Shown: positions 39,940 through 62,927 of the stretch, in pieces
Position numbering within the stretch: position 1 is the stretch's first letter
Layout of the letters: the number at the start of each line of letters is the position of its first letter
From: Podarcis melisellensis
Taxonomy: Eukaryota
Length of the DNA: 64,000 nucleotides
Assembly: GCA_964234715.1 (NCBI GenBank)
Contig: OZ174284.1
Strand: one strand, 5' to 3'
Notes under the pieces: model-generated
The model's database searches: none
What the model was told of the DNA's origin: nothing
What the model saw: only the letters and a program-made list of their open reading frames with translations
Translations under genes and position numbers: made by a program

Positions 39940-42900
39940 GTAAGAAAAAATTAATGACTTTATTTTTTATTTTTATTTTTTTAGTTAGTTGGTGACCTGA
40001 GGTGCTAAACTCTCAACACCAACAAAGCAAGTGTGCATAAGAACGTACAGAATGAAATGCAACCAAAAATAGGAAGTAAAACGGGTTGGGATGTTTAGAC
40101 ATGAAAACAGGTACGGTACACAATTTCCTGTTACACTGCACACACACCAACAATAAAACAGTCTGAATATCAGAGTTCCCACCTGTCCCAAGGGGAAGAT
40201 ACCACAGTTCCTTGGGACAGGGTTGTTTCACATACATACTTCTTTATATATATATATATGTATAAAATTAAATTACTGCAATGCCATCAAAACATGACAT
40301 CCCTTCCTCCAATAGCTTTAGTGACATTCTCATCTACCTTCCTTGCTTATGAAGCGCCACTGCTAGTGCTCTTGAAGGCAGCAGTTCTTTGGAAGCCTTC
40401 TGTCCTCTTATCATGCATCGAGAGAGAAATACCCTCCTCTACCTCTTCATATCAAACAGACTGTTTCGTGGTACATTTTTATTGCAAACAATCACAGCAT
40501 TTTCTTTTTTAAACATGAGGTTGGAAAACTAATACACCACTTTCGTCTCAGGGCCCAAATGTAAACATTCTGTTAAATACATTTTCTTAAAACCTTGCGG
40601 GGAGGGTATCAACTTTTTTCTTTTTTTTGGCCATAAAAAGAATTTGTGCTACTGGGTCATGCAACTCTGGATATATTTGTCGATGCTCTAAAATGCCTTT
40701 GACCTGGATGTATTTTAAAAAACAGATTAAAAACCCAGAGGACGCAGCAGGTGTGCTTGTTACTTCTGTATTAGCACCGTGTCATAAAAGGAGGACCAGA
40801 CACTGCATTTAAAGAAACCTCTTGACTGACAGCAGGATCAAGCACAATCAACACAACATATTACAGGAAATGTTAAGAGTGGAAGAGGAAATATGATTAA
40901 TGCTGCTGGTGCTGTCATGGGCTCTAAAACCCCTCTCCTCTCTCTGCAAGGGAGTCTTAGCTGCCCCAAAGAAGTCTGGGCTAACTAGAGGCAGAGCTAC
41001 ACAGCTGCACTGGAGCTGGGAAGAACTTTCCCTTCCACTTTCTCAGACAGACTGTTCTACACTCATTCCACATGCAGCTATAGGCAGCTTAGGAAGAAGC
41101 TTAGCGTGTCAACGTTTTCCTACAGTGAAAAATTCAAAGAACAGATAGAAGTGAGTTAAATTACGACCACTTTACAGAACAATCCCATTTTCTCAGTTCC
41201 ATTATAAATTGCACCAGGCACAGCAAATTTCGATTTGCCTCTTTCATGTGGCTAGACACCAAATTTTAACAACTGAATTCTAGCTCCATCCTAAACGAAG
41301 GGGAGCTTAACTTCCATTTTGCCATACACTCCCCTGTTGGTCTCTATGGATGTCAAAGATGTTGTCTGAGACAACTGAAGTTATATGTTCTTTTTCTTCC
41401 TCAATTAGGGGTGGCTAACCTTTTACTCCCGTTGGACTCCCATCAGCCCCATCCAGCATGCTCAGTAGCCAGGGATTATGAGAATTGTAGTCCAGTAATA
41501 TTAGGAAAGCCAGAGATTAGTCCCCTCTGTTTTGAAAGCTACAAATAAACACCACTTCTAGTGAACACCTCCCCCCAAAGTCTCATGAACCATTAACACA
41601 CAAGTCCTGCTTGTTCTGGGACTATATGTGGTATCAATTTTGCCAGTGTAGCATCACAATCTTTCAATATCTTAATATTCAACAAATGCCAGGCATGGTA
41701 CCCCTTTGGCACAAAATCTTCTGACACTACATTTCAACACATGCTGTTGTTTCAACAGCTTTCTGTTCAGCGTCATCAGTACTGACATTTTATTAAACAA
41801 GGAAGTGGATGGGTGTTTTAAAACCTTTCCCCATTTTCTCTCTCTAGCTTTCCTGTTTTGAAAACACAGCATTTCCTGTTTTGAAACCCAGAGATAAGAT
41901 GGTGGCTGCTTTAAAGGACATGCCTATTTCTTGGGATGACTGCTTCCCTAAAAAAAAAGTTCATTAAAAAAATAGTCTGCACTTTGTTTGGAGACTAGAA
42001 CTACAGCTTTCTTTCTTTAAACTAAGCCCAACTGGAGCTAAAAAATGCGAATGGAAAATTCTGTATGTGGCAGGTCGGCACTTTTGAGAAAGTTATTGTG
42101 AAAGACATGGTGTGCTTATGGAACCTCTCAGCTGGTTATAGACAAGAGTCTATTCTGTGTTATTTCCTATTTGCTACTGCACTGTAAGACCTTTTTCTGA
42201 GCCAACTGAATGAAGGCCTAGGACAAAACCAGTGGGGCTTGTGCTAATCCTTCCCTTGGGAGGCAGATTTTTACAGAGCCAGCATGTGTGGGGTTTTTTT
42301 AAATACATGGGGTAAAGTGGCAATGCCACAATTATAATTACAAAAACCTTAAACAGCAGTAGTTAAAATAAGCACAGGTTTGCCATTCAGGAACAGAGGA
42401 TATGGAGTGCAGGAGCAAAGTCTGCCATCACCACTCAGCTTTGTGAGCTCTCTTCGTGAGGATGCAGCTTAATTGAGAAGACACCCTACCTGGGAACCCT
42501 GCCTGCATATTTCCTAGGGTTGCCCCTCAAAGTGGTGCAGGGAAAAGTCCAAAGTACATAAAAGCATCTCCTCTCCACATCAAAAGTAGCGTGTAACTGT
42601 AACAGCATTAATAGAACTCTAATAAATAGGTACAGGGAAAGGGAGAACAGCAAATTAAAAATAAGAACAACAAAAGAAAAAGGTTCGGGAATGCAGCAGG
42701 CACACAGATTCACCACTCAAACATTTGCTCACTTCTTAAAAAGGTATAAAACCCAAATCTTTCAAGTATTAAAAAATAAGTTAATAGACATTAAAGGGTC
42801 TAAAGTGACTAAAGGGCCCGGGTAGGTCTTTTGCTTCATTTCCAACGTGCAAAAAATAATAAAGATATATATATCTATAGATATAGATATATACACAAAA

Positions 42901-43843
42901 AAACAAAAACCCATTGAGAGTCCATTCTTGGGGGATTCGAAGCAAGGGGTTTCATCCAAGAGCTCCCGCAAACTGCTTCATAAGTAACCCATTTTCAAAA
43001 TCAGCACTTTCCAGTGTCAAAATTGTCACAAGGTTCACAACAGAGCAGTCTAATGCCAATGGAGACAGGAAAAACTGTGACTTTCAGTCCAGAGCATTGC
43101 ATGGCAGAAAGGGGGGGGGGATTACACACTCTTCCCCTCTTAGAACAATGGCAACTTGTGGAGGCTGCAGCAAAGAGAGCTAGTCCACTGGAGCCCGTAT
43201 CTCCTGTAGAAACCACACAGGGCAAGTATTTCATGTCAGCCAGCCTTCCAAGTCTCCAGTCCTCTCTGAATTCAGGGTTCCTCCATACCCAGACAATAAT
43301 GGCAGCTTCAGGCTTCTTTGGTGAGGAGAACCTTAAACATACACACAGTGTGCTCTGGGGTACAGAGTGGTTTGCTCTCCCGTGGGCTGCTGCAGGGTGA
43401 TGCTTCAGAAGAGAGTAGCCACTTCTCGCCTTTGTATTTCAAAACAAAAACAAGAACACAACCAGCTAAGTAAATATGAAACGGACAAGCTACGGCCCAC
43501 CTGAATTGGTTAAAGTTGTGGTGTATTTTTTTTTTTTTAATAAAATGTTTTCATCTCATTTTTTAGCCTCTCTCAGAGATCACAAAAACTCAATGGCCTC
43601 TTTGCACAGGTCCTTGAGGAAGGCACACAACCTCAGCTGACCACCTCAGGCTTGGGGTTTGCAGGCCTCATACAGGCCTCAGCACTTTTCGATCCAACCC
43701 CCTCTCAGGAAGAAGCACCCAGGCGCTGCAAGAACCCTCAAGAGGTTTCTATGCCAAGGTATCTCCTCCATCCAGGCAGCTCCAGCCAACTTGGCACATG
43801 CCAACTGGACAACGCAGATCGGCAGACGAGTGCGCTGCTAAGC
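39940..43843 (-). other. MICAL3: MICAL3 3'UTR (~3.9 kb, probable)
   Basis: Runs from the stop to a cluster of three AATAAA hexamers; end inferred. Confidence 0.6.
39959..39977 (-). terminator. Triple AATAAA polyadenylation signal of MICAL3
   Basis: TTTATT on + at 39959-64, 39966-71 and 39972-77, followed on minus by a U-rich downstream element. Confidence 0.65.
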
Positions 43844-44028
43844 TCAGGACCAGTTTAAGTTGAATCCCTTGGACAGCATGACTGCCTCTAGGTCCTTGTC
43901 TTCTTCCTTCTCCCGGAGTCGCTGCTCTTCCAGGAGGGCCACAAGAGAATCTCTCTGTTCCACCACCTCTAGCATTTCATTCAGGATCCTTTTCTCTTCT
44001 GACAACTCTTCATCTGTCTTCAGGTGAT
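43844..44028 (-). CDS. MICAL3: MICAL3 terminal coding exon (end of bMERB domain)
   Basis: ttcctAG|ATCAC; (D)HLKTDEELSEEKRILNEMLEVVEQRDSLVALLEEQRLREKEEDKDLEAVMLSKGFNLNWS*, TGA 43846-43844. Confidence 0.97.
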
Positions 44029-44121
44029 CTAGGAAAGAAAGGGACAAGCAGACTTGTCAAACTAGCCAAGGAAGTAGCTGGGGCTTTCTATTGGGAACCA
44101 GAGTACATCGATGAGACTTAC

Positions 44122-44195
44122 CTTCCACTGCCATCCTCTCCCGAAGTTCTTGCTGTAGTCGGCTTTGCCTGTCCTCCAGTTCCAACTCCCGAGCG
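44122..44195 (-). CDS. MICAL3: MICAL3 coding exon (74 nt)
   Basis: ttgcAG|CGCT...GGAAG|GTAAGT; (F)ARELELEDRQSRLQQELRERMAVE; phases 2/1 fit its neighbours. Confidence 0.96.
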
Positions 44196-44793: not shown

Positions 44794-44893
44794 AATATCA
44801 TGAGCTCCGACTCATAGCGCACTAAGGCATTCTTCTCTTGCACCAGCTTGAACCACTCCTGCATCAGTTTGGGGTCGTCCTTCTTCCCCATGC
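44794..44893 (-). CDS. MICAL3: MICAL3 coding exon (100 nt)
   Basis: ggcAG|GCATG...ATATT|GTGAGT; (G)[32 protein letters not shown]. Confidence 0.96.
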
Positions 44894-45712
44894 CTGCCAA
44901 GAGAACAGTTTAGGTCAGCTTGGAGAAAGATTCCCGCCATTTCCATAAACCCAGCAGGCAGGCAGGCAGGAACAAAAATGGGAGTGGGGCAAAATGTGCA
45001 AAGAAAGCTGAGCTAGATGCTGCCAGAGCACTCTTGTCAGATCTGCTTGTTTAGTTTGTCTATGGCACACAGGAAGGAGGGTCACCTCCAGTAAAAGAAA
45101 CAAAAAAAACCCCACTGGATCCATGTGCCCTGAATCTATCTTCCCCATCACATCTCCCACCAAACCAATAGCCATAATTACAGTCTCTTTTCAGTATTTT
45201 TCTTCTGTTGTCCTTTTCAATTTGGACACTTTCAAACATAGGTCTGACACTTTCCAACACTTTCCAAGAAAGCCTACCTGTTTCAAGCCATGTTTTCTCA
45301 CTCACACCTTACTCAACACCCATTTGTCCACTTTACATATAACTGTAGAGCAATTAGTGAACAGTTCCTTGGTGGGCTGTTTCAGAGTTGATTCTGGCTC
45401 CTACCAGTATTGTAGTCTTATGTGCTGTACTCTCCCCTTTTCAAGTCACCTGCATTAACTTAATGACGGAAAGCAAACAGTTCCTGACCACTGCTATCAA
45501 TAATTTCCCTTCCTCTTGGCTTTATCAGTCACATCTGCCTCAATGTGTCTGCTAGAGATCCTTCACTTAAACAAAAAAACACGTATTGTGTGGCATAAAT
45601 GTGGTTCAATCAGTTGAAGTTCACCAGCTCAAGACCACTAGTTCATGGTAGAAAAGCACAAGAAGAAAATCTGCTCACATAAAAAAGAGGAAGCATGGTA
45701 CTTTCCCAGGTA

Positions 45713-45945
45713 TAGTCACACCTCAGGTTGTGAACGTAATCTGTGCGGGAGGCACGCTTGCAATCCACAATGCCGCATCTGCGCACGCATGTAAAGCAAT
45801 TCAGCGCTTCTGCGCCTGGGATCATTTTGCGCTTCTGCGCATGCACTGAAACCTGGAAGTAACCCGCTCTGGTACTTCCAGGTGCGGCGCGGTCTGCAAC
45901 CTGAAAACACGCAACCCACAGTGTTCACAACCCAAGGTATGACTG
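45713..45945. mobile_element. Tc1/mariner-type MITE (different family)
   Basis: TA-flanked imperfect TIRs tAGTCACACCTCAGGTTG / CAACCCAAGGTATGACTG; CpG-rich interior. Confidence 0.75.
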
Positions 45946-47795
45946 TATTTTAATAAAAGCTTAATCAATGAAAACCAAGCTAGTAGACCCAGTAGAAAAG
46001 CCTGATATGAAATAAACAGCATAGCCATTTTATGCTATTTTAGAGAGCTACATCCACAACCCATATCTAGTAATGAAATATGCAGCTCTTTATGGGTAGC
46101 TGTTTGGATTCAGATCCTAAAAATCAGTTTGGAAGCAAGTGAAGCCCTGGTTATGTGCTTCTGATGATCAGGGTCTTGGCCTAACCACTGTTGGCCCAGA
46201 GGGATTCCAGCTGTTTCCTGCACCAATCAGATTTCACCATCCTATCAGAGGTGTCGATAGTTTAGGAAACTGGTACATGGCAAGAACACAGTCAAGTTGC
46301 AGACAGGGTTAACTCCTGTTTCTCATCCATACCATAGATGAGTTCTCATCTCATATAAAACTAATGGGAACATTTATTCTAAGGAAAATATGATGCAAAA
46401 TCTGTTCCTACTTATGTGCAAATGACAAAATATTTGTATTAGACACTATTCTAATTATTCACAAATGCAGACTCTTCTTATGGGGCTATGGAAGCCCAAG
46501 GGAGACACTCTAGAATGGGGATGGTCAGCTACCAAGTCAGATCCAGCTACCAAAAGCATTATTATCTGTTCCTGGTAGTGCTTATCAGTACTGGATGGCA
46601 CTGACTAATGCGTCATTTGTAATTGAGGATGTCTTTATGCAACAAGACATTATTTCCCATCACGGTCAAGAAAACAAAGTGGTCCAGAGGTTCTTGGTGG
46701 CCCTGTTCCTACCACTTATTCTCAGGTAACGAGAATTCTCCTCCTCTTCCAAAACCACCAACACAGCTCCAGAACACAAGAAGCAAACAAACACAGTACG
46801 AAAATCTCACCCTAGCCAATCATGGCTGTGGATGGCTATACCTATCCATTGCTTGGTCCCAATTAAGCCTCTCTGAGCATCTCTGCACAAGGTGCCCTCA
46901 TAGCCATGGTGGAAAGAGAGAAGAAGCTTACACATGCAGATGCCCAGTGCATTGGAGCCATGAGAAGCACTGGGAAATCTCCCCACCCTTTCCACTGTGA
47001 GGATAATCAGAAAAGAAACTTCTGCACAAAACAGCCAAATACATGTCAACACTGACCTATGGAAACTTTTGTTCATTTGTGGGATGTAGATATATTTTAT
47101 TATTATTATTTTTAGACAGCCAATGAGCAGAGGGAGAGGCAGGGGTGGGGAGGAAAGATGAACACTTGATGAAAGCACACCATGAAAAGCAGAGAGAGTG
47201 GTTAGCCGAAGTTATACATGGCGGTCACATTCCACCCCTTTCCCCCCATGCCTTGGGAAATGGAAACACTTCAGTGGGAATCTGGTTCCACTTGGGATAA
47301 AGAAGATGCTTAGCAAGATACGGACTGCAGGAGACCAGTATGGATTATGGCAGATCAGGAGGTTGCCTTTTCAAAGTCAAGGGTTGTTGGGGAAACCAGT
47401 CATTACAAAAGACAATATGCCTTAACCCATGTGTATTATTTTTTTTAAAGGAAGTAGACTCACACCCCACTCCCCTGCAAGATCATCCAACATGCCAAAC
47501 AGAACCCTTAAGGCATGAAACTGATGCCACTACAGTCATTTCTGATCAATTGCGCCAATAAACTTCAAGACTATCCTTATCCCCACAATACACAGCTGAA
47601 AAAAGGATACTGTACCTTTACGATCCTGCCAGACACACTTCATAACAAGGTTGTTATAGAGGGTTTCTTTGAGATTGAAGGAAAGAAAAGTTTGGCGGTG
47701 AGCCACTTGATATTGTTGCTAGCTCACTAGTGTCTCTACACCAATCCAATGGCGGTTTGGGAACGGAATGGAGGGAATGCAAGAAATTACATTAC

Positions 47796-47861
47796 CTTCA
47801 TGGGCACAGCAAGGGCAGAAGGAGAGAGGTCTACGGCGTGGTGTCCCGGCATTGGGCTCAA
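47796..47861 (-). CDS. MICAL3: MICAL3 alternative cassette exon (66 nt, phase 1-1)
   Basis: ttgaAG|TTGAG...TGAAG|GTAATG; (V)EPNAGTPRRRPLSFCPCCAHE; frame-preserving, preceded by ~200 nt pyrimidine tract; resembles an insert I recall from vertebrate MICAL3 isoforms (not verified). Confidence 0.8.
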
Positions 47862-48479
47862 CTTCAATAGAACCAAAGATGGGAGAGGAAGAAAGGAAGG
47901 GAAGAGGAAGTTGGAAGTGGAGAGGAAGAGAGGAGGAGAAACAGGGTGAAAATAAACAGACAAGCAAAAGGACAAAAAAGCACAAGAGTGAGAAAGAAAG
48001 GAAACAACAAGAAGAAGTAGAAAAGAAAATAATAATACAAGAAATGGAGAAGCAGAAACAAGGGGAACAGTCTACAGATGGAACATCCTTTGCCAACACG
48101 AATAATGGAGAAGAGCAGACTGTGGCACTGGGAGGGGAAACAGTGTGGGCCACAAAAGTTACTGGGATAATGGGGAAATGCCAACACTTGACATTTCTTG
48201 TGCTTGGTGACTTTTCACCCTCCATGTCACATGGTGCAGTTAAGAGATAAGAGCACTAAGAGGAGGGTGGACAACATTAAGTTTCTAAAAGACCAGGAGA
48301 GCAAATAGGTTTTAAAAGGCCATCTTGAAAATTAGCTTGGCACATTCCATGTGGTTTTTTTGTGACATTGTCCAAGGAAGTAGGTTGACAGTGGCAAGTA
48401 TGTGTTCAGTAAACAAAGGCAGATCATGGCGCAAAACAGGACTGACTGCCTATGATGGGCAAACAAACCAAGAGTAAAC

Positions 48480-48615
48480 CAGGGATACAGAACCTGTTGT
48501 CTCCCTGCCCCAAAAGATTTTGGATTCTCATTCACCCCAGTCAACATGGCCATAGTCAGGGTGATGAGAGCTGTAGTCCAGCAGCTTCTGGAAGGCCAAA
48601 TGTTCCCCTATCCTG
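48480..48615. mobile_element. Degenerate hAT-type MITE (related decayed copies near 32700-32870, 41405-41530, 50120-50255, 56490-56592)
   Basis: Shared CATGGCCA..GTCAGGG..TGAGAGCTGTAGT signature, CAGG...CCTG ends. Confidence 0.6.
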
Positions 48616-51458
48616 GGTCTAACCAAAGCCTTGACCGGTATTTTACACATATTCATGCATAGTTTGTATTTCTGGCCCTGCCAATATCAAGGGTAGACAG
48701 AAAGTTGAGGACTATGCCCCACTGGTATGTTTGTTTGTTTGTTTGTTTGATGGATGGATGGGGGGGGGGAAGTTTGAGTATGTGGCAATTAATTAGATAT
48801 AACACAGTAAATTAACATTTCCCAAATTTCTGATAAAAGAGGTAGTTTGTATTAAAAAATAATAAAATGGGAGGAATAATTCTCAAACTTACACACTCTG
48901 ATGCAGAGAATAGCCTCTTCCTATGGGTTGGCACTTATGGGAACCATCAATTATCCAATGAATTCCTCGGTTTGGGAATTATTGCGGTAGATTATACATA
49001 AAGAGATGAATAATCTTATAGAATAGGGATGAGGAACCGGGTGCTGCTGTGTACAGAAGCCCCAGCAACCAGCTGATCATTGGGGCTTGAGTAGTGCAGT
49101 CCATGATGCTTTGTTAACCCCCAGTGATCTATATATTACAGAAAGACCTGTGGCCCATTGACTAGTCTGTGAGTAGAACGGAAGTGAAAGAAAAATGCCA
49201 CTGTGTAATAAGGAGCGGCTGAATTTATAAAAAAGAGGACATTCATAACCCACTAGAATCAGATCTACATGCACATATAATGGTGAGGGAAAGCCTCAGT
49301 TCTCATTTACGAAGATAAGGTCTGGGAAGGGAACAGCTTTTAGAAGGGACCATCACAGAACTAGAGCAGTAACACACAGGACAGACCAAAGTTAAAAGGG
49401 AGGAGGCACATCAGTTTGCAAATAGTGTGTGAATGAGCAATGTGAATCTCTCAACAGGAAGAAACATGTATACTCAGTGTGAAAAGGGTTAAAAGTGCAT
49501 CACATATACATGTTACATGGTGCCCATCTGTATGTGAAGACTCATCTTCTTTGAAGACATTCCATAGTATCCCCAGACAACTTTTCTCTCTCCCCCCCCC
49601 TTCCAACAAAACCAAACAACCAACAAATTGAATGCCTTAAAAGTATTTTTGTCGCTTGGGAAAGAGATCCATGAAAATCCATGTCGTGTAACAATGCACA
49701 CAGGTTTTTCTTTAAAGTGGCAATGCAATGGTGCTTTGTTTTTACTTCACAGGTCTCCTTCAAGGCCTAGTCTTGGATAGATATGTATTCCATTCTTAGT
49801 ATGTGTAAAAAATACAAGAATACAAGTGGGTTGCTTGGATTAAATAGTTCTAAAATGCACAGTCAAGCTGTACACCAAAGGAAATACTCTCTGAATATTC
49901 TTGCATTTGCTGAAGTTCTTCCTCAGCCATGATTAAGGTTAAGATGACCTTTATGTTTTGCTTTGAACTGGGTGGATCCCATGGTGTACTGCGCTGCTAC
50001 TAGACCAGGCTTCTATGCCGATTCAGTGTGTATCAAGGCTATATATGGAGCTACTACCACTTCCATGGTTGCAGCAGCCTAGTTCTAGCTGCCACACTCA
50101 GTGATACAGATCCTGAATGAGTGGTGGGAACTTGTGGTCCTCCATATGATGTTGGGCTACAATTCCCATCACTCCTGACCACTACCCATGCTAGCTGGGG
50201 CTGATGGGATCTGTAATCCCACAAGATCTGGAAGACCACAGGCTTCCCATTCCTGTCCCACATGCAGATGCCAGTTCACATAACAGTACCTCTATGCAAG
50301 CACAGACCACCTCCCAATTTTGAAGGCCATTGCATGGGATCTCACCTGAAGATTTCCAGGTGAGATAAGAGAAAATTGAGCTTGGAGGCAAAACCACTGC
50401 TAGTGCAAACCATGGTTCAACATAATATCTTAAGTGTCTCCATGGAGCCCCCCGACAATCCCCTCCATCTATGGTGTAACTAAGTCAGTTGGAACCACAG
50501 GATACCCTTGCTCCCAGAGCTTGATACTGGAGTAAGCAGAGACGGGTTTCAAGAGATAAGGCAGACTGAAATATCAACTATGGAGGGTGGAGATTCTTGG
50601 GCTTATTCCACCACATAGGCAGGCCTCTTGCTACTATTGTCAATAAACCTATATCCAATAGCTACAATGTTTTCCCCAACAGTACCTGCAGCAGAACCTG
50701 GACCATTAATAGAATGTCTTATCCAACTCCATGGATAATCCTCAGAGACTAGTCATAGCATCCGATTAGTAAAGATGTGTTGAATAGTCCGTTATGTATA
50801 CAGATAGTTCAATAATATAAATGGATAAATCCTTTCTCCGTATCACTGAACTTGAAGCAAAAAAAGATCACAAAGGCTACTAGACAGCAAACATTTCTAT
50901 TGCTCGTCAGCAAATGCCTATATGAGCAAGTTATGTGTAGCACACAGACCACCTGAAAGTACACTCAGAACAAAATGTCTAACAATTTATAAAAGCTCCC
51001 ATTGCCAAGAGATGATGATTCACCACTGCTAACTGACTAGTGAGAGACTATTTAAAAGCCTGCAGCAATTTATGAAATACATATCTTATTGAAAAACTAG
51101 ACTGATCCTGATCAACTTTTTGCTAGGCCAACTAGGATCAAGCAGCAACTCAACTCACTTTGGGTTTGGTCAAGAAATGCCTTCAAGTACCATGCAGCAA
51201 GGCATGAAACTTGAACATGATCACACCATCCTTTTTGTTTTGCTTAGGACATGAACTGAAATAGATCTTATGTAGCTCAGATACTTGCAGAGTTCCAACA
51301 CAAAGAATACATCCAGCAAAAGATCATTATTTAGTGTATGTTTCCCAAACACGCCCAAGCTAAATGAATCTTGGAATCCAGTTCTATGCATGTTTGCTTG
51401 GAAGTACAGGTGCCTAAGTTCTGATGCAATGCACAGTCATCTTGCATTAACTGAACTA

Positions 51459-51692
51459 CAGTTGTATCTTGGAAGTTGAATGGAATCCATTCTAGAAGTC
51501 TGTTCAACTTCCAAAACCAAAGTGCAGCTTCTGATTGGCTACAGGAAGCTCCTGCAGCCAATCAGAAGCTGCGGAAGCCCTGTTGGACATTTGGGTTCCA
51601 AAAGAACATTCAAAATAATCACTTCCAGGTTTGTGGCATTCGGAAGCCAAAACATCTGAGTTCCAGGGTGTTTGGGATCCAAGGTACAACTG
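51459..51692 (+). mobile_element. Tc1/mariner-type MITE with internal CCAAT palindrome
   Basis: TA|CAGTTGTATCTTGGA...TCCAAGGTACAACTG|TA; internal 23-bp-arm hairpin at 51524-51572. Confidence 0.88.
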
Positions 51693-52300
51693 TATTACTA
51701 TTGCAAAAAAAGTTGACAGTAAGACGCATGAGACCCAAAGATGTTACTTTATTACTATAAATGTCTCCCTTTTGTTTAAGCACTAGGTACAGGTACATCT
51801 ACAGCTTACAGTGGATTATTATAGGGTTCCATATGTCTGGATTTCATGGACACCACGTTGTTTTGGCATTTTTGTAACCAGCTCCTGGTTTTTGAAATAT
51901 GGTAACCCTAGATTATTGCAGCACTAAAATAACTTTAAAACAGATAAACCCACTGTACAAATGCATGCACACATATGTGCACTGGATGCTAACACTGGAA
52001 ACAAACCCAAATTCCATACATTTGGCTGCAGTTAGTCTTCTGCATATGATACCGTATGCGATATGTAATAAATATGAAACACCCCTTCCCCCCTTTTCAC
52101 TGGATATTGATAATCAGCCTATAAGCGTGATGTATTCAAATCAGCATGCATAATGGCATCATATGATCACTTAAGCTTGGCATCAGATGTTCCAAAACTC
52201 AAGAATTCACTCAAGAGCTGGAGAAGGGTGTCCTGTATTATGCATCACCAGGCAAAAAAGTCAAGTCAGGGAACTGAAGCAAGGGCGACTGCTGAACCAT

Positions 52301-52303
<3 letters not shown>

Positions 52304-52346
<43 letters not shown>
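52304..52346. repeat. (AAT)n microsatellite (expanded retroposon tail)
   Basis: About 14 AAT units abutting the retroposon 3' end. Confidence 0.95.
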
Positions 52347-52347
<1 letters not shown>

Positions 52348-54254
52348 TTATTTGTACCCCGCCCATCTGGGTAAGGTGAATCCAGAGAGAAGTGGGGAAG
52401 TATAAATTTCTATTTGAGCCGTGTTTGACTCTCTGCATTTTAGTCTGAACATCTCTCTTGTGAACATCTGTCAGACCTGCCCCTCCATCTCTGATCAACT
52501 CTGTTTTATAATCAATTATACCTCCCCTTTCTTCCAGTGCAGGATTACTCAGCCATAAGCCTGGCATTGGCATCAAATGCTGATAACCATGTTTTCCACC
52601 TGCTACAGAGTCCTTGGAACTGACTCCTTACATGCCAAGAGACCAGTACTGCCTCTACACTCCTTGATACTGTTGGCTACACAACTGCCTTTTTTTGCCC
52701 TGGTTTGCTAGTGCTTAAAAATAATTATTCCAATATCACTTAGAGACATCCAAAAAAATTCTGGTGACTGGATATATTTTACTATTACACAATGAAACTG
52801 AAAATTAATTTGCTGTACAAGCTAAGGATAAAAACAACATGCATTCAACCCAATATCAAGACCTCCTGATCGTTGACCCAAGGTGAAATATTTTCCCCCA
52901 CCTCCATAATAACAGTTCTGAAGCCCCTGGTATACCAGAAGGCCTCTGCCTAGGCTTACTACTAGGGGATGCTCTGAAAGGACCTTGCAGTGTGTTCCTG
53001 AGCCACCCCTGGCAGAGAAGCCCAGGCAAAGTCAAAGGGGGAGGCTGAATCCACCCCTCAGGCTTCAAAGACATTGGGACCCAGGCAGTTAGTCAGTGAG
53101 CGCGTGCACACTTGGGAGTGCAGTGTTGCTGTGTAATTATTGAGTCAAAGGCTCATTGTAGCTAACAAAACTCAAGAGCAAAGGCTCTTACGGCAGACTC
53201 AAGCACCAGAAGCTGGTGATGGCATGGTTTGGGAGTCCAGGCTATATCAGGCTTCAGTTGGAGTCTGCTGCTTGTTGAAGACAATCCACCATCCAGCTCC
53301 TTACTTCTGAACCTGACTCCTTTGCCTCCCCCTGCTTCCTTCTTAGAGCTCATCAGTTGCTGAACCCAAGCTTACCAATGCTGCCCTGGATTACTTTTGC
53401 CTAACCCTAACCCTTCTGACCTTGGTTTGATCCTGGCACAGCTTTCCGGACTCCCCTTGCTAAGGTCTGGTGATACCATGGCTGGGCTTTATTGTGCAAT
53501 CTGCCTCCATCTAACCCACTGACCCAGCTGGAGTATGAGTCTGACCAAAGGGTTTGGAGCTTAGCACCGATAGCCCTGAATATAAACCACTGGAATTTTG
53601 CTTCCAATGATGGATATTGGAGTCCAAACCAAGAATAATGGGAGACACCTTCATGCCAGCACCCGAAATTGCTGCTGGCGCTGAACACCTAAAGTGATGA
53701 GAAGGAAATGCCTGAACTAAACCCCTTCTCAGCACAACATCCTTCTCCTGTACTCACCAGGTGATCAAGCCATGACTGCTGAACATTTCTTAGGCCATGC
53801 ATATGCCATACAAGAACATGTGCAGGCACTTACGGGTGTGGCATATATCTCTGACATACATAGCAACTGTTTCTGTAGGGGTCGTAAGAATACAACTGCA
53901 CGCTGAATCTCTCTCGTATCAAAGCAAGAGCATTTAGTAGCCGGTTCGCAAATGAACATATGCCCAGGGAATAGCAAGAACGTGGCTGGAACATGTTTCC
54001 TCCTTTATCTTGAGCAGAACCCATTGTGAATGCAGAAGTCAATTCAGGTTGAGACCCATTGGTTACATTTACTGGCAAGATGAAGGAGAGGACTTTCTGT
54101 CAGCGCCTTTAGAAGTATATATAAATTTTAGCATTTATGCAGTGCTTTGTGAAGTGCCTTGGCTATTCAAACCAATCATCCTATTATATCTATTACAACA
54201 GGCATAGAAATGTATTATATGCAACCATTTAAGGCAGCCATTATTAAGCCCATA

Positions 54255-54347
54255 CTTCCCCAAGGTGGCTCAGTGAGAACAGCAGAGGTGAGGTTTGAAC
54301 CAGGGATTCCCTAGCTCACAGTTCAGCCTCTTAGCCCCTACGCTACA
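54255..54347 (-). mobile_element. Old CORE/MIR-like SINE fragment
   Basis: Minus strand TGTAGCGTAG..CTAAGAG A-box-like, GGTTCAAACC B-box, CACCTTGGG core. Confidence 0.5.
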
Positions 54348-57300
54348 GTGACTCTTGAGCACTCTGGCAGCCCTGTGAGGAAGTACTGAAGAAACACCAG
54401 TCACAGAGGAGTATAAAAAGAACTAACACTACAAAGCCACGTGTGTCTTTTTCTGCACACAACACTGCATTTTATTTAAAGGGATACTGCCAAGTAGTGA
54501 AGTTTTCTGCTGGGGATTAAAAAAGAAATAAAGAAATCAAGACAGATTAAAATAATAATGATCTTCCATTTGGAATTGTGAATTATTACCTCTATCTGGG
54601 CTGGAGTTGAAACTAGCAAAAAAAAAAAAAAAAATGCCTTTAAAACCCCAAAAGTGTAGGGGAGAAGTAACCATGGCTAATATTGCATACATTTATCCAA
54701 ACAGGAAATGTAGGGAACCAAAGTATATAATCGTGAGAAGCAAATGAGATTTATTAATTTACTTATGCTAGTTCTTTATGACAGAAAGTGAGGTTAGTTA
54801 ATGTGAAAAACGACAGTGTCCCTTTAAATGACTCCGATGACTACTTTTTAAAGCCACTGTTAGCAAAAATGACAAGACTGCTGCCTTCAAGAGGGAATTA
54901 GGAAGGGAAGGGGGGGGGAGGAGGAGAAGGAAGTGTGGGAGCTGCATCAGCTAGGAGCAGGACCTGTTAGGTGTAACTTTGCATTAACCCTTTTACAGCT
55001 CTGTCTGTGGGCACACAATGCCCCCTAGCGGCACACTCGGAAAGAAACCCCACATAGGCAGAGCACTGGCCTCCAGAGAGGAGCCAGCAACTCTTTCTAG
55101 CAGGGATGTGTCATTTTGCTTTGAGCCAGGGCTGGAGAGCCAACAGCATTTGCTCCACCTACTGATTGACTCCAGGTGAGTGGAGGCATGGAGAAAGGAC
55201 CTGAATCTTTCTGTTATCTCCCACAACATGTTAAAACAAGAAACAGTTTGGTGGCCAAGCACCTCAGGCACTTAACTCTCCAAACTGACCTCTGTATTTG
55301 GCTGCTAAAGTATGGAGGGAGAAAACTGGCAGAGCATTTTGCTGCTCACAAAGGGGAAGAAAGGGTCTATGTCTCCTTTGCACGGAGGAAAGGTGCAAAA
55401 TAATGAAAGGGGGACCCTTTGAGATTTGGGACTATGATAGGGTCAAGTTAGGGAATTCCTGGGGGCCTATAACTTCCTGGGCTACCACATACCTATTTCT
55501 AAACTATGAGGATTGAAACCACAAAACACTGTTGATCTCCTTAACCTGCAAACTGCCAGTCTGAAGAACACGGGTAGCTTGCTTGATTTTTATGGAAGTG
55601 ACGCAGCAATAGTTCAAAAACATTAGTGATATACAAAAGTCACCTTGAGGAGACTTGGCAATACATCCTTCTGCCACCAACTCCCAAGGAGTAAGGACCA
55701 GAATTTAAGACACCTTGGAAAACAGCTGTAGTACCAAAGATGTGTTGAATCAGTCCTGCATGACTGGTAACCCACCATGTCAAAATGTAGCCCACCAGGG
55801 TTTCAAGCAACACCTGATGTTTTGTTTTGCCCTGGACTGCAAAAACAGGAAGGCTATCAAGTACCTGCAATGTCATAATACATGACCAGTGAGCTTGATG
55901 GGACACAATTTGTGCTGGCCTGTGTTAAAGTTGTAATACTACTGCAGAGTGGGGGGTGTTATTCATAAAAAAGTCACTATACATGGGGGTGGGGGGTAGA
56001 AAGACAAAAAAAGAGAAAAGAATAGGAACTATATCATGTTGGGGTGATCTTTGAGGATGAACTTTACACAAGGAAAGAGAAAGAGCCTGTGAATACCATC
56101 TGAGGGCTTGTTCAAACTCTTTTTTAATTTCAGAAATGACAGGGCATGTGTAACATTTGTGTGCTCTCCTGGCCACCCATCCATTTGCAGGAACTCTAGC
56201 ACTCACAGTTTGGCAGTGCGGATTAAGTGTGATAATCTGTACAATTTTCCCTACAGTAACAGGCAACAGTATTTAAAGAAGCATAGCAGTTAAAAAGAAA
56301 ATATAGTCCTTATAAAGTGTAACAAAGTGTGTTGAGGGGGCAGCTGTCACTGCTTTGAGGGTGGGGTACAATCCTTGAGGGAGAATAAAGTATATAAGTG
56401 CTAGATTATCTTTGGGAAGAAAAATCTAATCAATAGTTTGGATTTACTTATCAACAAAATGCACAGCACAACTAAGTTTAGGGGCTAAACTGGAGGTGGC
56501 TAATCTATGGCCCTCAATCAGTCCCAGCCAGCATGGCCAATAGTCAGGGCTAATGAGAGCTGTAGTTCAATAACATCTCAAAGCTACCCCTGGTTAAATG
56601 ATGAAGTTTGAAAAGAGGCCATGATCCAGAGAGCTCCTTTAGCTAAAGTCTTGTACATGTACCCCAGAGGTCCCTCTGTTTTTCATTACAGCACCACCGC
56701 CTGAAACTACATTCAAGCTACAACTACTTTTCACAGCAAACACTGACCACTGGCAAGAGCAGCAATCCCATGTCTCTCTTTCTCCTCTTCCTGGATGCCC
56801 TGTAATGCTTAGAAATTATAAACATGCAACATATAATATTGCACTTCCTTGTCCCCCTCCATTTCATTGGCTGCCACAAGATTGCAATAATGTGGCACTA
56901 CACATTTTTAAATGCCAGAGGGATAGTCAAATTAGTACACTGCGGCAAAAACATAGTCTTGCGCCACCTTAAATACTAACACATTTTTATGGCATAACCT
57001 TTCATGGACTGAAATTCTTAAATGTCACCAATGGAGAGAGGAGGAGGAGATGACTCAGGGTTTTTTACCTCCATGATTCAGAAATAGTTTCTCCAGTATT
57101 ATTGCGTTGGAGGAAAAAGAAGGCACCCAGCTTAGAAGAGAGTCCCCTGTGCATGCACAGAACTCAGCACATGACACTTTGGATCAGGCCTCCAGTGAAT
57201 CCCAGAATAAAAAAGGAAAAAAATCAAAATGTGTACAAAAGACAATTTGTTGCCAACAAATTTTGAGTATTAAACTTCTTTCTCAGGAAAGGTTATTTTA

Positions 57301-57836
57301 AGTTGTTGCAGAGGTTTATCCTGGTGGAAAAAAGAGTAAAAAAATCAACCCTTGAGAAGGGGTTTAATATTCAAAAAGTGATGAGAAATAAATTCTCTGA
57401 ACTTCTGCACATCTCTTCCACTTTTGTTCCTGGTTTTTTTTCCTACAGGAAACCACAATGGAAACCATTCCCCCTGCCCATCACTGGGGTGTTTTGCAAA
57501 AAGCCTAGACTTCATGTGACATTGCCCAATTGTGCACCTGACTGTTAACTAGACAGCTGGTGGTGCGAGCCCACCCTGGGAAGGCTGTGAGCAGGATTCC
57601 TGCCAACTCTGCAGTTGTGAGATTCTACGTTTCCAAAACACTGCTCATTAAGGACTGCTAGTTCTCCTCCGAGCTGGAAAAGGGGTTGTGCCCTAGCCAA
57701 TCAATTAGGTGCAAGACTGGTTTCTTCTCATTGCTTGTGAGGAGCCAGGGATGGAAAGAAGTAGGTGGAGGGAGAGGGTGGCGGGAGCAGGTGTCAGCAG
57801 GGTTAGTGCCAGCAAAGAGGTTTCTGCCATACATAC

Positions 57837-57887
57837 CACCCAGGTGCAAGTCGATGAGGTCACTGTAATAAGACTCTCCCCAATAGT
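57837..57887 (-). CDS. MICAL3: MICAL3 alternative cassette exon (51 nt, phase 1-1)
   Basis: ccttgttgtAG|ACTAT...GGGTG|GTATGT; (D)YWGESYYSDLIDLHLG; frame-preserving; resembles an insert I recall from vertebrate MICAL3 isoforms (not verified). Confidence 0.82.
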
Positions 57888-59321
57888 CTACAACAAGGAA
57901 TCGGTGAAGAGAGAGAGTTATTGGTTCAAGTACCCACCCCTGCTAGCCCTCCCCACTCCCTGCCCAGGATTCAAAGCACTCTGTAAGAGAAATTGCATAC
58001 ATAAGAGAAGCAAGACAGGGAAAGAGAGAGACAGAAACAGAAGAAACAAGAAACCATGCAACTCTATAATAAATATATACACATACATATATACGGTATA
58101 TACTGTAAAGACACGGGGAGGATAAAGTATTCCCTGGTAAATAGGCAGGGAGGACAGGCAGGCATGGATTTCCAGGCAGAGAAGGAGAGCAGGCTGGATT
58201 CTGTATGAGGATTTCTCACCTATACTGGTTTGTTTCAAGATGAGACACTGCACTGTTATTTTGGGGGACATTAAGGAAGGATCCACAAACATTCTCCAGT
58301 AGGGAGGGAATTCGGGGAACGATACATCTCCATTCAAGAAAGCAGGGAAAGGAGTTGGGCTGGGTTTTCTCATTCCATCCTTCTTTTTATTCAGCTACAT
58401 TGTTTTGTGTCGGCTAAGCAACCAGAAATGTACTAGGGTCTTCACTCTTGCAGCTTCTTTTTGGTAAGTTTTTTCACCTCCGGGGTAAATCCATAAACAA
58501 GCCCAATGGAATCTGGGATCTTGCATGTAAGATTGGTCTTGGGAAGGCTAAGGGCATAGCCAATTCTTTGGTAACTTTTCTCACACATCTACATTCCTGC
58601 AATCACTTTCCATAAATGGCAGATACTGTTTTATAGGATGTTGTGAAAAGTAGGAAACATGAAATGGCCACATGGGCCGGGGGTGTGTGGATTTGGGCAA
58701 GGAACTCAACACCATATAGCTAGGAAAAACTAAGCAGTTGCCATGCCCCTTCTGCAGAATGTAAGGGTTCTTCCCCTAAAATAACTATGTTCTACAAAGA
58801 GTCTCCATTCTGACCCAAACGAAAACCCCTCCAGTTTAAATAGGGCATCCAGTATGCCTAATAATCATGTCAATGTCTGCTGGGAGTATATAACATTTGG
58901 AAATCTTTATACATTCTGGTAAACTCTGAAGAGCCTTATTAAAGCATATGATGTATGCAACAGACTTTAGGGTCACTTAACTCAAGAGAACAAAAATATG
59001 TATGGAAGACTTAAATCCTCTGAACTGCTCATCATAAAGGGTTTCCTTGTGTTTCCAGGATGACACTTTTCAAATTAATTTATTTCTAATCAGAAATAAA
59101 ATGTCAATTGTTACTTTAGTTTCAACCCCTAAGAAGGAAGCACCATGACAGACTCAAGAAAATTGGTGTCAGAGTTGGTTCAATGCTCAAAAATTTCACT
59201 TGGGTCAAGTGTTATGCAAGCTGAACCAGTTGGCCTCAGGTGCCAGGTATTTTGGGGAACACCATTAAAGGCCACCGAACTATAATTAATTATTATTACT
59301 ACCAAGTAGTAAAGGGCACCA

Positions 59322-59572
59322 CAGTCGTACCTTGGATCCTGAATGCCCTGGAACTCAGATGTTTTGGCTCCCGAATGCCGCAAACTCAGAAGTGATTGTT
59401 CTGGTTTGCGAACGTTCTTTTGGAATCCAAACATCTGATGGGGCTTCCACAGCTTCTGATTGGCTGCAGGAGCTTCCTGCAGCCAATCAGCAGCTGCAAG
59501 TTGGTTTCCAAATGTTTTGGAAGTCGTACAGACTTCTGGAACAGATTCCATTCGACTTCCAAGGTATGACTG
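59322..59572 (-). mobile_element. Same MITE family as 51459-51692, opposite orientation
   Basis: Reverse complement aligns along the whole length to the 51.5 kb copy. Confidence 0.88.
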
Positions 59573-61958
59573 TACTTGGATTTTCTGCCTGGAATACCAA
59601 AGTGCATTGGGCTGTTTATGGAATGCACAAAGTATGTTCCCTTGACACATCGCACAATAAGATGAACTTCAGTTTTCAATATATAAAGTAGCATAGAAAG
59701 TGTACAAAAGTGCTCCAGGCAGAAAATCACTTCCTAGGTAAACACAATGTCAAGGGCATTGTGTGCTGTGTGTTTATTACAACATGATAAGCACATACCA
59801 TGTCTGTTTCACCACAAGTGCACATAGTAGGAGAGCTTTTGTGTATTTGTCCCATGTTAAAGTGTGCATGCAATGCTCCTAACAATAGAAGCAGTATCAA
59901 TGTAGAATAAGTCTTGCGTGATATGGACACAAAATTCTAATTAACTCATACACAAGGAAGCTGTTTTAACAATAAAGAATGGGTAGTTTGGGGAAGGTGT
60001 TCTCTTCCCATCTGCATTACCAAAGCAGAAGCTCCTTTTCCAGCAAACCTGTTACTAGCCATTAAGAGAATAAGGCTTTGTAACTGTAGTCTGCAAGGCA
60101 TATCAGTTTGGCCAATACTATGTACACTGCATAAGGCAGTCAAGGTTGTTTGGACAGTATACAGAAATAGGTTACTGCTGATATTAAAGGTGTGTAAGGA
60201 AAAATAGGTTTTAAGGCACATGAAAATCTAAAAAATTAATAATTCTCTCATCTCATGAAACAAGAGCATGCCCCATTAACAGTCCATTTTTCATGGGATT
60301 ACTGAATATGGACATCTTTCAGCTATAAGTCCTGAATTCAAAAGGCAATCATTAATACTCATAGGCACACCTGTGAGGCCCCAAAATAAGCCAACCTTTT
60401 CATTTGTCTCTCCCTCTCCATTTCCCCATCACATTTTAGATATCTAAAGCCATCTCTAATAATTTTCTGCTTGCCAAAGCACCACCACTGCCCATGAAGT
60501 GTGGCAAGTAAAGCCCTCAGTTGTTTGCAAAGCTCCTCGAATTCTGATGACACCACCTATAAGGATGCTGGGGGACAATGAAATGAATGTCAGGTGACAA
60601 AAAAAGAGAGTTTGAGATGGCTGTAGACTGTTGAATGTAGAGGTGCATAATTCTTTCTATTCTTTTAAAACTATATACCTGCATTCATTTTATGAAGCAA
60701 TTTAAACAACAGTATTTAAATAGTTGTAAAAGTATTCCAGGGATTAAGTTCGAGTGAGTACATGATTTGGCCCCAGCTGATGCTGTGAGCTACCACTAGC
60801 AAAAAGCTGCACTCTGCAGTCCTACCAAAACATATTCTCTATAGATTCTCTCCCTTTCAAGTTGGAGGCAATCAAATTCTCTCTGATGCAACAAGAATGA
60901 CTCTGAAAGCCTGAAAAAAGCATTTTCAACCAGATTCAACTGCAGGATAAAATAAGTAAGTTTGGGCAGCTAGTGGTGATGGCACTATCAAAATGTACTC
61001 ATTAACTCAAAAATGTTAATATCTGTATGTAGCTTTAGGGAAGACTGCCTTTGAAAATAAGGAGAAGGTATGATGCTCAGTTTGTGATTGTGGTGCACTA
61101 GATGTTGCTGGTTTCAATCTTAAAGAGATTGAGTCCCACACAGTTCCCTCCCTGGGGCTCCCTTGCAGGTGCCAAGATCACTGTAGGCCACTCTCTGCAA
61201 AGTAATTTTCAACTATAAGGATACATGAGACTTCCCGAGGGCTAATCCACAATTATGGAATTCCTAACCTTTTAAGTTTTGCCAAAACCTGGGTATCTAA
61301 CACAGGTAGGGAAAGCCTCCTGTAACTGGGGTGGCATATGGTGGTCAAGGACAGCAAATAGGGGATTAAAATTTAATTCATTCCTGTGTTGCCTTTGATA
61401 TTGTTAAATCTGTCTCAAATAGGCTGTTATTTACCAGGAGATTTCAGAACAGGGCAGGATATACATCGTAATAAAAAGAAATACATCGTAATAATTAAGT
61501 GTAATGTTCAGGTAGTATCTGTTCTTAGTGCACTGATTGTCCGGTCACTGATAATCCTACCGCATTCCTATTGGAAATTTCAGTGTGTCAATCCAAGCTT
61601 CAAACAAAGCAGAAAAACAATTCTTCCAGGCTGTTTTGAGGAAAGTCAATTTAGTTACATTTCCCTCCCAAATTTAAGGTCAGTATAACAAAAGGTTATA
61701 TATTCTCAAAATTAAGTTAAATTCATTTTCACCAAGTAGGTTGCCTCTTACACCTCTGGTAAATGGATCATGTGAAATAACCTGGGCTTTTGTGTATTTG
61801 CCTCTACTTGTTTCTCAAGGAAGGAGTGGCAGAATATGAGGAAATCATCATCTAACTATGTTCTCTCCCACGGGTGAACTAGACATTATGGCAGACACAG
61901 GGCTACAGGTAAAACAGTATTCTCATTACTATTTCTCGTAAGGTCTAGTGAAACTCAC

Positions 61959-61988
61959 CATGCAATGTCTTGCAGTGAATTCTCTCAC
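61959..61988 (-). CDS. MICAL3: Candidate MICAL3 30-nt microexon / recursive-splicing exon
   Basis: Branch-like CTTGAC, pyrimidine tract, TGCcgAG|GTGAGA...CATG|GTGAGT; phase 1-1, open: (G)ERIHCKTLH; the GAG acceptor is atypical. Confidence 0.4.
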
Positions 61989-62833
61989 CTCGGCACCCAA
62001 TGAAGAAGGATGGAGGCAGGGAAAGTCAAGAGTGACGACATCACGTTGCATAGCAATTTTCACTGGGCATTAAGAAGGGTGTGTGGGCAGAAGACTACAT
62101 GCAGAGTTTGGGGTTTTCAGTAGCAGTCCTGTGTGTGCAGTAACATTTAGTTCTGCTCTTAATGTCTTTCATCTATGTTAATTCCAAGTACCATTCATTA
62201 GACCAGGCCATCAAGTGTAGAGGTTCATTCCATTAACAGCAGATGACGATGACAACAACTGTTTCACATGTTGTATTGAATTTCTGTTTCACACGCCTTG
62301 AAGCTGTGCATGATTTTGCAGAGAGCATGTGGTACTTGCTGGGGCTGTTCTGTGATGGTCCCTTATGAGGGTGCTAATGCTGATTCAAGGCACAGTGAAT
62401 TAAAAAACACAAATTTATATCAATTACTTTCTTCTCTTTTTCATCTTGCTGGGCAAAGTGAAAGCTTCCTTGCCACAACCAAGTTTTATTTCCTAAAGGA
62501 AAGCTAGGCAGATGGCTAACTTATATGCATTACCACCTTTTTGCAATAATTGGACAAAACTTTGTCCTGAAGAGGTGAAACGTATTTTCAGAGCAAATGA
62601 AACCCGGCTAAGGGAACTTGCCATTTAGGTAGCTTCACAGGCAGAGAAGCCCAAGATCTGATAGAGAAGGGAAATGGTGAATTTTAATTCATTTGTTTAA
62701 AAAGATAATTTAATAAAAGAACTTGCAGCTTAGGGAGGGACCAGTCTGTAAAGCTAGCACACAGGTTGTTATGAACCTTTGCATAAAAATGTAGTAAGAA
62801 AAGAAAAACACAAAATGGAAGACTGGAAGGTAC

Positions 62834-62927
62834 CTGCTTCTCCCCTAAGAGCCTTCTCAACAGCGACTCCCCTCTCCTCCAGCTGCCTTTGCTTCTCTTC
62901 TACTTGCTCCAGCTGTCGTTGGATAAT
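62834..62927 (-). CDS. MICAL3: MICAL3 coding exon (94 nt, first part of bMERB)
   Basis: ttttcccatAG|ATTATC...GCAG|GTacct; IIQRQLEQVEEKQRQLEERGVAVEKALRGEA; joins in phase 1 to 44893. Confidence 0.96.

Follow-up and report, generated by a model that had tools for sequence, protein, structure and literature searches.

Evidence for two conserved cassette exons in the helix 1-helix 2 loop of the MICAL3 bMERB domain at a Podarcis melisellensis locus

Introduction

MICAL3 oxidises actin, and its own bMERB domain holds the enzyme off until Rab GTPases bind. In the autoinhibited form of the paralogue MICAL1, helices 1 and 2 of this domain contact the CH domain, and MICAL1 S960 is a reported PAK1 site (bioRxiv 10.1101/2024.06.17.599268). 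The interface between the CH domain and the Rab-binding domain (RBD) is conserved in MICAL3 (PMC11315924). The bMERB form studied in structural and biochemical work is the one that lacks inserts (PDB 5SZG). Alternative splicing of Mical3 has been described as well. PTBP2-dependent Mical3 exons were reported with the identity of the exons unspecified (PMC3896118), and a 51-nucleotide (nt) Mical3 cassette in smooth muscle is regulated by RBPMS, RBFOX2, MBNL1 and QK (PMC12721327). Here we examine the 3' end of MICAL3, which lies on the minus strand of a 64,000-nt stretch of DNA from the lizard Podarcis melisellensis (contig OZ174284.1), hereafter the window. A long intron splits the bMERB coding sequence at the junction of residues GEA and GMGKK.

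This intron likely carries two ancient phase 1-1 cassette exons of 51 and 66 nt, which can be skipped independently and give four C-terminal isoforms, together with two segments of 30 and 54 nt that are open by chance. All four had been put forward as exons or candidate exons in the original prediction for this locus. Both cassettes are already annotated in RefSeq and Ensembl-derived models from dozens of species. We found no paper on either the 51-nt exon, recognizable by the residues DYWG, or the 66-nt exon, recognizable by CPCC, in the literature on MICAL3, including that on microexons, palmitoylation, PTBP1 and exon inclusion. The contribution of this study is not a new element. Real exons are sorted from chance ones, the insertion point is fixed on solved structures, and the sole published 51-nt Mical3 exon that we found is shown to be a different exon.

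Results

Conservation of the 51-nt and 66-nt exons

As read directly from the sequence, the intron that splits the GEA/GMGKK junction is 17,940 nt long, in phase 1 (44894-62833, minus strand), and the two introns 3' of it are 598 nt (44793-44196) and 93 nt (44121-44029). The predicted arrangement of one long intron followed by introns under 1 kb was thus correct. In the sturgeon the intron at the equivalent junction is approximately 12 kb and its exons have the same order.

The four proposed segments (51, 66, 30 and 54 nt) are all bounded by AG and GT and open in phase 1-1, which is a weak, non-discriminating criterion for exons here. The intron contains 1,454 open phase 1-1 AG..GT segments of 12-300 nt, compared with approximately 941 in composition-preserving shuffles, so an open AG...GT segment alone is no evidence for an exon. 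Splice sites were scored with a crude hand-made matrix. The two real exons were unremarkable: the 51-nt exon scored 3.1 for its acceptor and 6.8 for its donor, and the 66-nt exon 0.6 and 7.2. As splice motifs alone are indecisive, the segments were compared across species.

The last exon was searched against a representative protein library, and database proteins were then used as queries. The window exons themselves were compared peptide by peptide. The approximately 490 retrieved proteins were classed by their content between ...EKALRGE and DDP.LM. Orthologous DNA came from a bird, Limosa lapponica (L001), and a sturgeon, Acipenser oxyrinchus (L002), whose locus covers the entire intron.

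The 51-nt exon (57837-57887, minus strand, phase 1-1) shares its first codon with the upstream exon and encodes DYWGESYYSDLIDLHLG. It is bounded by the acceptor ttgtag and the donor gtatgt. These 17 residues, or similar ones, occur at the GEA/GMGKK junction in annotated models of lamprey, sharks, teleosts, amphibians, reptiles, birds and mammals. Among the variants D.W is invariant, and most follow the pattern DYWG[DE]S...[DE]L.LG. The DNA is identical to that of the sturgeon at 47/51 positions, and the splice sites, ttgtag and gtatgta, are retained. Judged by this conservation, the 51-nt segment is a genuine conserved cassette exon. A CU-rich tract lies upstream of it, with 13 motifs per 250 nt compared with an intron mean of 2.4. 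QKI/CAC/YGCY motifs 3' of this exon were recorded as a motif count only.

The 66-nt exon (47796-47861, minus strand, phase 1-1) lies between the acceptor ttgaag and the donor gtaatg and encodes VEPNAGTPRRRPLSFCPCCAHE, which is annotated at the same junction from lamprey to mammals. Its DNA is identical to the bird sequence at 65/66 positions and to the sturgeon sequence at 57/66, with ttgaag and gtaaYgtaa retained. Twelve distinct 22-residue variants of the peptide were found, and R.RP...CPCC..E is invariant across all of them. By the same measure of conservation, this segment too is a genuine conserved cassette exon. The original prediction had supposed that both exons have counterparts in other vertebrates, and the peptides and DNA comparisons bear this out.

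Immediately 5' of the 66-nt exon is a conserved intron stretch of nearly pure pyrimidine (47862-48080, minus strand), a probable splicing-control region. By gapped BLAST, the block 48080-47787 shares 87.5% identity with Limosa over 296 nt, higher than the blocks around the constitutive exons (77% and 76%). The upstream stretch has 11 UCUU/CUCUCU motifs in 250 nt, against the same intron mean of 2.4. A conserved 66-nt exon preceded by approximately 220 nt of conserved pyrimidine is, in terms of sequence, the signature of a regulated exon, and the CU-rich tracts upstream of both cassettes suggest PTB-type control. For the constitutive exons, DNA identity is 85-91% with the bird and 66-89% with the sturgeon. 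Set against these values, 65/66 in the bird and 47/51 in the sturgeon indicate that the cassettes are conserved at least as strongly as the constitutive exons.

Three other blocks of the intron are 66-74% identical to Limosa (55001-54812, 49474-49339 and 47274-46849, minus strand), and no convincing in-phase exon was found in them. These bird-shared blocks may be splicing or transcriptional control elements. One Limosa model (P0003, L001 12296-12362) appeared to contain an extra exon, FGLVRIAGRHPKTYQVSFLA. This model begins within the 66-nt exon, in a different frame, and runs through the 61 nt of intron that immediately precede the GMGKK exon; the extra exon was rejected as an artefact of read-through.

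Annotated isoforms and their cassette content

Other species provide examples of all four combinations of the two cassettes, in annotated models and in spliced contigs. The canonical form with no insert was represented by 43 proteins in the first set, some of them on contigs shorter than the intron. DYWGESYYSDLIDLHLG alone is present in Varanus, Chelonia, Pongo 'isoform 4' and many teleosts, in both mical3a and mical3b. VEPNAGTPRRRPLSFCPCCAHE alone is present in Gekko, Python, Mesitornis, Chelonoidis X2-X5, Merluccius, Pongo 'isoform 5' and P0386. Both cassettes, the 51-nt exon followed by the 66-nt exon, are present in birds, Hemicordylus, Anolis, turtles, a caecilian and Xenopus, and also in echidna, carnivores, bats, pig, whales, rodents, two sharks, carp and river lamprey. 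Snakes are also among the groups whose annotated MICAL3 models carry cassette peptides at the junction. Several of the proteins come from contigs too short to contain the intron. Both cassettes are skipped in four such sauropsid contigs (P0180, P0182, P0183 and P0387), two fish contigs (P0153 and P0388) carry the 51-nt exon only, and P0386, 248 residues on a contig of 1,804 nt, carries the 66-nt exon only.

The combinatorial use of cassettes that had been predicted is therefore found in other species as none, 51 only, 66 only and both. The predicted range of 4 to 16 isoforms holds at its lower end, since two cassettes are supported and give four forms. The figure of sixteen required the 30-nt and 54-nt segments, which are unsupported as exons.

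The two exons could instead be constitutive, or silent, in this lizard, in which case there would be no isoform switching. The Hemicordylus capensis model (P0299), the one recovered for that species, includes both cassettes, and this agrees with constitutive use. However, the spliced contigs of close sauropsids skip both, and the squamate annotations with a single cassette differ among themselves (Varanus 51 only, Gekko and Python 66 only). Sub-optimal acceptors and highly conserved flanking intron are also typical of regulated exons. We consider fixed inclusion or silence very unlikely, and independent skipping of two cassettes is the reading that we prefer.

A further segment was seen at this junction in teleosts. 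Three mical3a proteins (P0159, P0164 and P0399) have 17 additional residues, GLYKGT...KRRS, between GEA and DYWG. They are either a third cassette or the result of an upstream exon extended to a downstream donor. No counterpart of this segment was found in the window.

Placement of the cassettes in the bMERB fold

The Pfam bMERB family (PF12130) matched residues 1829-2055 of P0299 with E = 2.1e-41, and the match spans the inserts. PDB 5SZG, the MICAL3 bMERB domain in the form without inserts, matched with E = 5e-71, and the alignment breaks between chain residues 44 and 45. An AlphaFold model of P0299:1829-2055, built with a 49-sequence alignment, had a mean predicted local distance difference test (pLDDT) score of 79.9. 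Three helices are predicted, at residues 7-65, 116-163 and 172-220. The loop between the first two (66-115) contains the inserted 17 and 22 residues, with RGEA before and GMGKKDD after them, and pLDDT falls below 50 at 75-112. In the model the cassettes thus extend a disordered loop between helices 1 and 2, which has 11 residues without them and 28, 33 or 50 with one or both, while the helices remain intact. That both exons would insert at one position between helices 1 and 2 had been predicted, and the loop in the model and the break in the 5SZG alignment agree with it.

The form without inserts was aligned ungapped with full-length MICAL1 (8y6k_A) at an offset of +891. This alignment reproduces the published residue names L956, R957, W970, V971, L974, L975 and V978, and it places the insertion at S960/S961. 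Of the residues that contact the CH domain, L956 and R957 come before the insertion and V971, L974 and L975 come after it.

Short candidate segments without conservation

The 30-nt segment (61959-61988, minus strand) would encode GERIHCKTLH, and the 54-nt segment (46713-46766, minus strand) would encode AVLVVLEEEENSRYLRIS. Both are unsupported as exons. The acceptor of the 30-nt segment, ccgag, is weak, with a crude score of -1.9, and 13 segments of the intron score at least as well as the 54-nt candidate on the same matrix. No BLAST match to either segment was found in the bird or sturgeon locus. In global alignments to bird and sturgeon, the 54-nt segment shows background identity with indels and lies just beyond a moderately conserved intron block. 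Not even a six-residue word of either peptide occurs in the approximately 490 retrieved proteins. These two candidates of the original prediction, with weak acceptors, no conservation in bird or sturgeon and no trace in the proteins, were not upheld. From their sequence, both segments look like chance AG...GT open segments.

Alternatively, all four segments could be real, the 30-nt and 54-nt segments being young exons specific to squamates or to this species, and there would be more than four isoforms. Such exons would be missed by a comparison with one bird and one sturgeon, and neither candidate lies within a repeat in the window. Besides an open phase 1-1 frame and a GT donor, which both have, the 30-nt segment has a very strong donor (CATG/gtgagt, score 10.4), and its pair of scores is matched by only 2 segments of the intron compared with 0.2 in shuffles. 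Against this stand the weak acceptors of both candidates, the 13 equal or better chance rivals of the 54-nt segment, the lack of conservation in bird and sturgeon, and the absence of both from proteins that include models of Hemicordylus, Anolis, Gekko, Python, Thamnophis and Varanus. We think a set of four cassettes slightly less probable again than fixed use of the two conserved ones.

Least probable of all is a role of the 30-nt segment as a recursive splice site or recursive exon in stepwise removal of the long intron, which would normally leave no trace in the mRNA. An AG does abut a donor (...ccgag/gtgaga...) with a second strong donor 30 nt downstream. However, base composition predicts approximately 2 occurrences of AG/GTRAG in the intron and 3 were counted, the polypyrimidine tract is broken up, the motif has no match in the sturgeon intron, and vertebrate recursive sites are typical of introns far longer than 18 kb.

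Constitutive exons and neighboring features

The four constitutive exons were identified on the minus strand. The first (62834-62927, 94 nt) encodes IIQRQLEQ...VAVEKALRGEA, the C-terminal part of helix 1, and ends in phase 1 at the donor gtacct. Its peptide is identical in Hemicordylus capensis MICAL3 isoform X13 (P0299), and its DNA is 82% identical to the sturgeon locus. The second (44794-44893, 100 nt) is preceded by cag, begins with the two remaining bases of the split codon and encodes GMGKKDDP..., the start of helix 2. It is likewise identical to P0299 at the peptide level, and its alignment to PDB 5SZG begins at chain residue 45. The third (44122-44195, 74 nt) encodes ARELELEDRQSRLQQELRERMAVE. 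The last coding exon (43844-44028) encodes helix 3, DHLKTDEEL...KGFNLNWS, with coding sequence at 44028-43847 and a TGA stop at 43846-43844, and matches PDB 5SZG with E = 1.5e-19. In P0299 all four constitutive peptides and both cassettes were matched with zero mismatches.

The last intron (44029-44121, minus strand, 93 nt) has an in-frame length. The copy in the window contains a TGA, and its retention would truncate the protein. In Limosa (L001) and in the sauropsid-like P0001, P0002 and P0010 the equivalent is open and is read through as approximately 31 residues between helices 2 and 3, including a hydrophobic stretch (GESKRE.F.D..CVFLALC.L.VFDIS.). A simple repeat of dinucleotide type lies at 42859-42916, in the presumed 3' untranslated region. 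With the low-complexity filter off it produced hundreds of spurious BLAST matches to simple repeats of the sturgeon.

Discussion

Two cassettes older than the lamprey split and independently skippable remain the likely account of this intron, and several points weigh against it. For this lizard, the case for inclusion and skipping draws on a RefSeq model together with evidence from other species. The forms that include both cassettes are mostly automatic gene models, and such models can join exons that seldom appear in the same transcript. The crude hand-made matrix makes the splice scores weak evidence against the 30-nt and 54-nt segments, and the DNA comparison covered one bird and one sturgeon. 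As for function, S960D in MICAL1 left Rab binding and MO-CH-LIM binding unchanged in vitro (bioRxiv 10.1101/2024.06.17.599268). As the substitution changed neither, the loop may, by analogy, be functionally inert for both kinds of binding.

How might the cassettes work? We picture them as modules added to a loop that tolerates insertion, and not as elements that disrupt the fold. Modules seem preferable to distortion of the Rab or CH surface because the loop is predicted to be disordered and because a phosphomimetic is tolerated there in MICAL1. A basic run that adjoins a cluster of cysteines is the usual context of S-acylation. In the 66-nt cassette, RRRPLSFCPCC combines a basic run, a serine and such a cluster, and would be a putative S-acylation or membrane-contact patch. 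The consensus of Akt, RSK and SGK is R-x-R-x-x-S followed by a hydrophobic residue, and the serine beside the cysteines is a putative basophilic-kinase site of this type. The 51-nt cassette is acidic and aromatic, and might serve as a short linear docking motif for a partner. Inclusion is probably governed by the conserved flanking intron, with its long CU tracts upstream of both exons. Position and motif content make it plausible that the cassettes tune Rab binding, membrane anchoring or autoinhibition.

A more specific proposal is that, across vertebrates, the 66-nt cassette acts as a membrane anchor within the Rab-binding domain that splicing can switch on or off. CPCC would be S-acylated, R-x-R-x-x-S-F would be phosphorylated by a kinase of Akt/RSK type to release or block the anchor, and the 51-nt cassette would add a separate motif that binds a partner. 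We advance this tentatively and think it rather unlikely to hold as a whole, though less so than any of the three alternatives weighed above. No literature linking MICAL3 to palmitoylation was found. If the proposal were true, MICAL3 would gain a Rab-independent seat on the membrane next to the CH-docking surface responsible for keeping the enzyme inactive, and the place and time of actin oxidation would vary among the four isoforms.

Apart from any mechanism, the loop carries two optional peptides, older than the lamprey split, that lie three to four residues from CH-docking residues, where MICAL1 has a regulatory phosphosite. The role of the CPCC and DYWG modules is a question that we pose to MICAL specialists.

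The closest known counterparts are the annotated MICAL3 isoforms that carry DYWGESYYSDLIDLHLG and/or VEP..GTPRRRPLSFCPCC..E between ...ALRGEA and GMGKK. The exons, the junction and the phase are the same as in the window and no structural difference was found, these isoforms being known as database models. Examples are Hemicordylus capensis X13, Anolis carolinensis X2, Gallus gallus X16/X17, Rattus norvegicus X14, Lampetra fluviatilis X16, and Pongo abelii 'isoform 4' and 'isoform 5'.

The published smooth muscle exon (PMC12721327) resembles the DYWG cassette in that it belongs to the same gene, is 51 nt long and inserts 17 residues near the C-terminal coiled coil. However, its flanking exons in the rMATS data are 95 and 111 nt, whereas those here are 94, 66 and 100 nt. 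The identification with the DYWG cassette was rejected on these lengths, and the QKI/CAC/YGCY link was dropped with it. A flank of 111 nt fits the 37-codon exon PRTY...LKRLHRAQ directly before the window's first exon, so the published insert would be SIYVPH...SSK, one exon further upstream. It is located upstream of the bMERB helices, beyond the window, and not within the bMERB loop. MICAL3 thus has a second 51-nt cassette, SIYVPHALAFKRSYASK, before the exon that precedes the window's first exon (upstream of 64000), and by its flank lengths this is the published exon. The proteins compared at this site include P0367; P0299 and P0007 contain the SIYVPH...SSK insert, and P0014 and the whale models lack it.

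EHBP1 offers an analogy for the CPCC cassette, as a bMERB protein with a lipid-anchor motif on its Rab-binding module (PMC7442826). The EHBP1 motif is a constitutive C-terminal CaaX prenylation box, whereas that of MICAL3 is an internal, optional cluster of cysteines for which S-acylation is putative. The PAK1 site of MICAL1 is comparable in position, since the MICAL3 cassettes insert at the aligned S960/S961, between CH-docking residues, and in both proteins this point is a candidate regulatory handle. In MICAL1 the phosphosite sits in a short, fixed loop, whereas MICAL3 exchanges whole peptide modules there by splicing.

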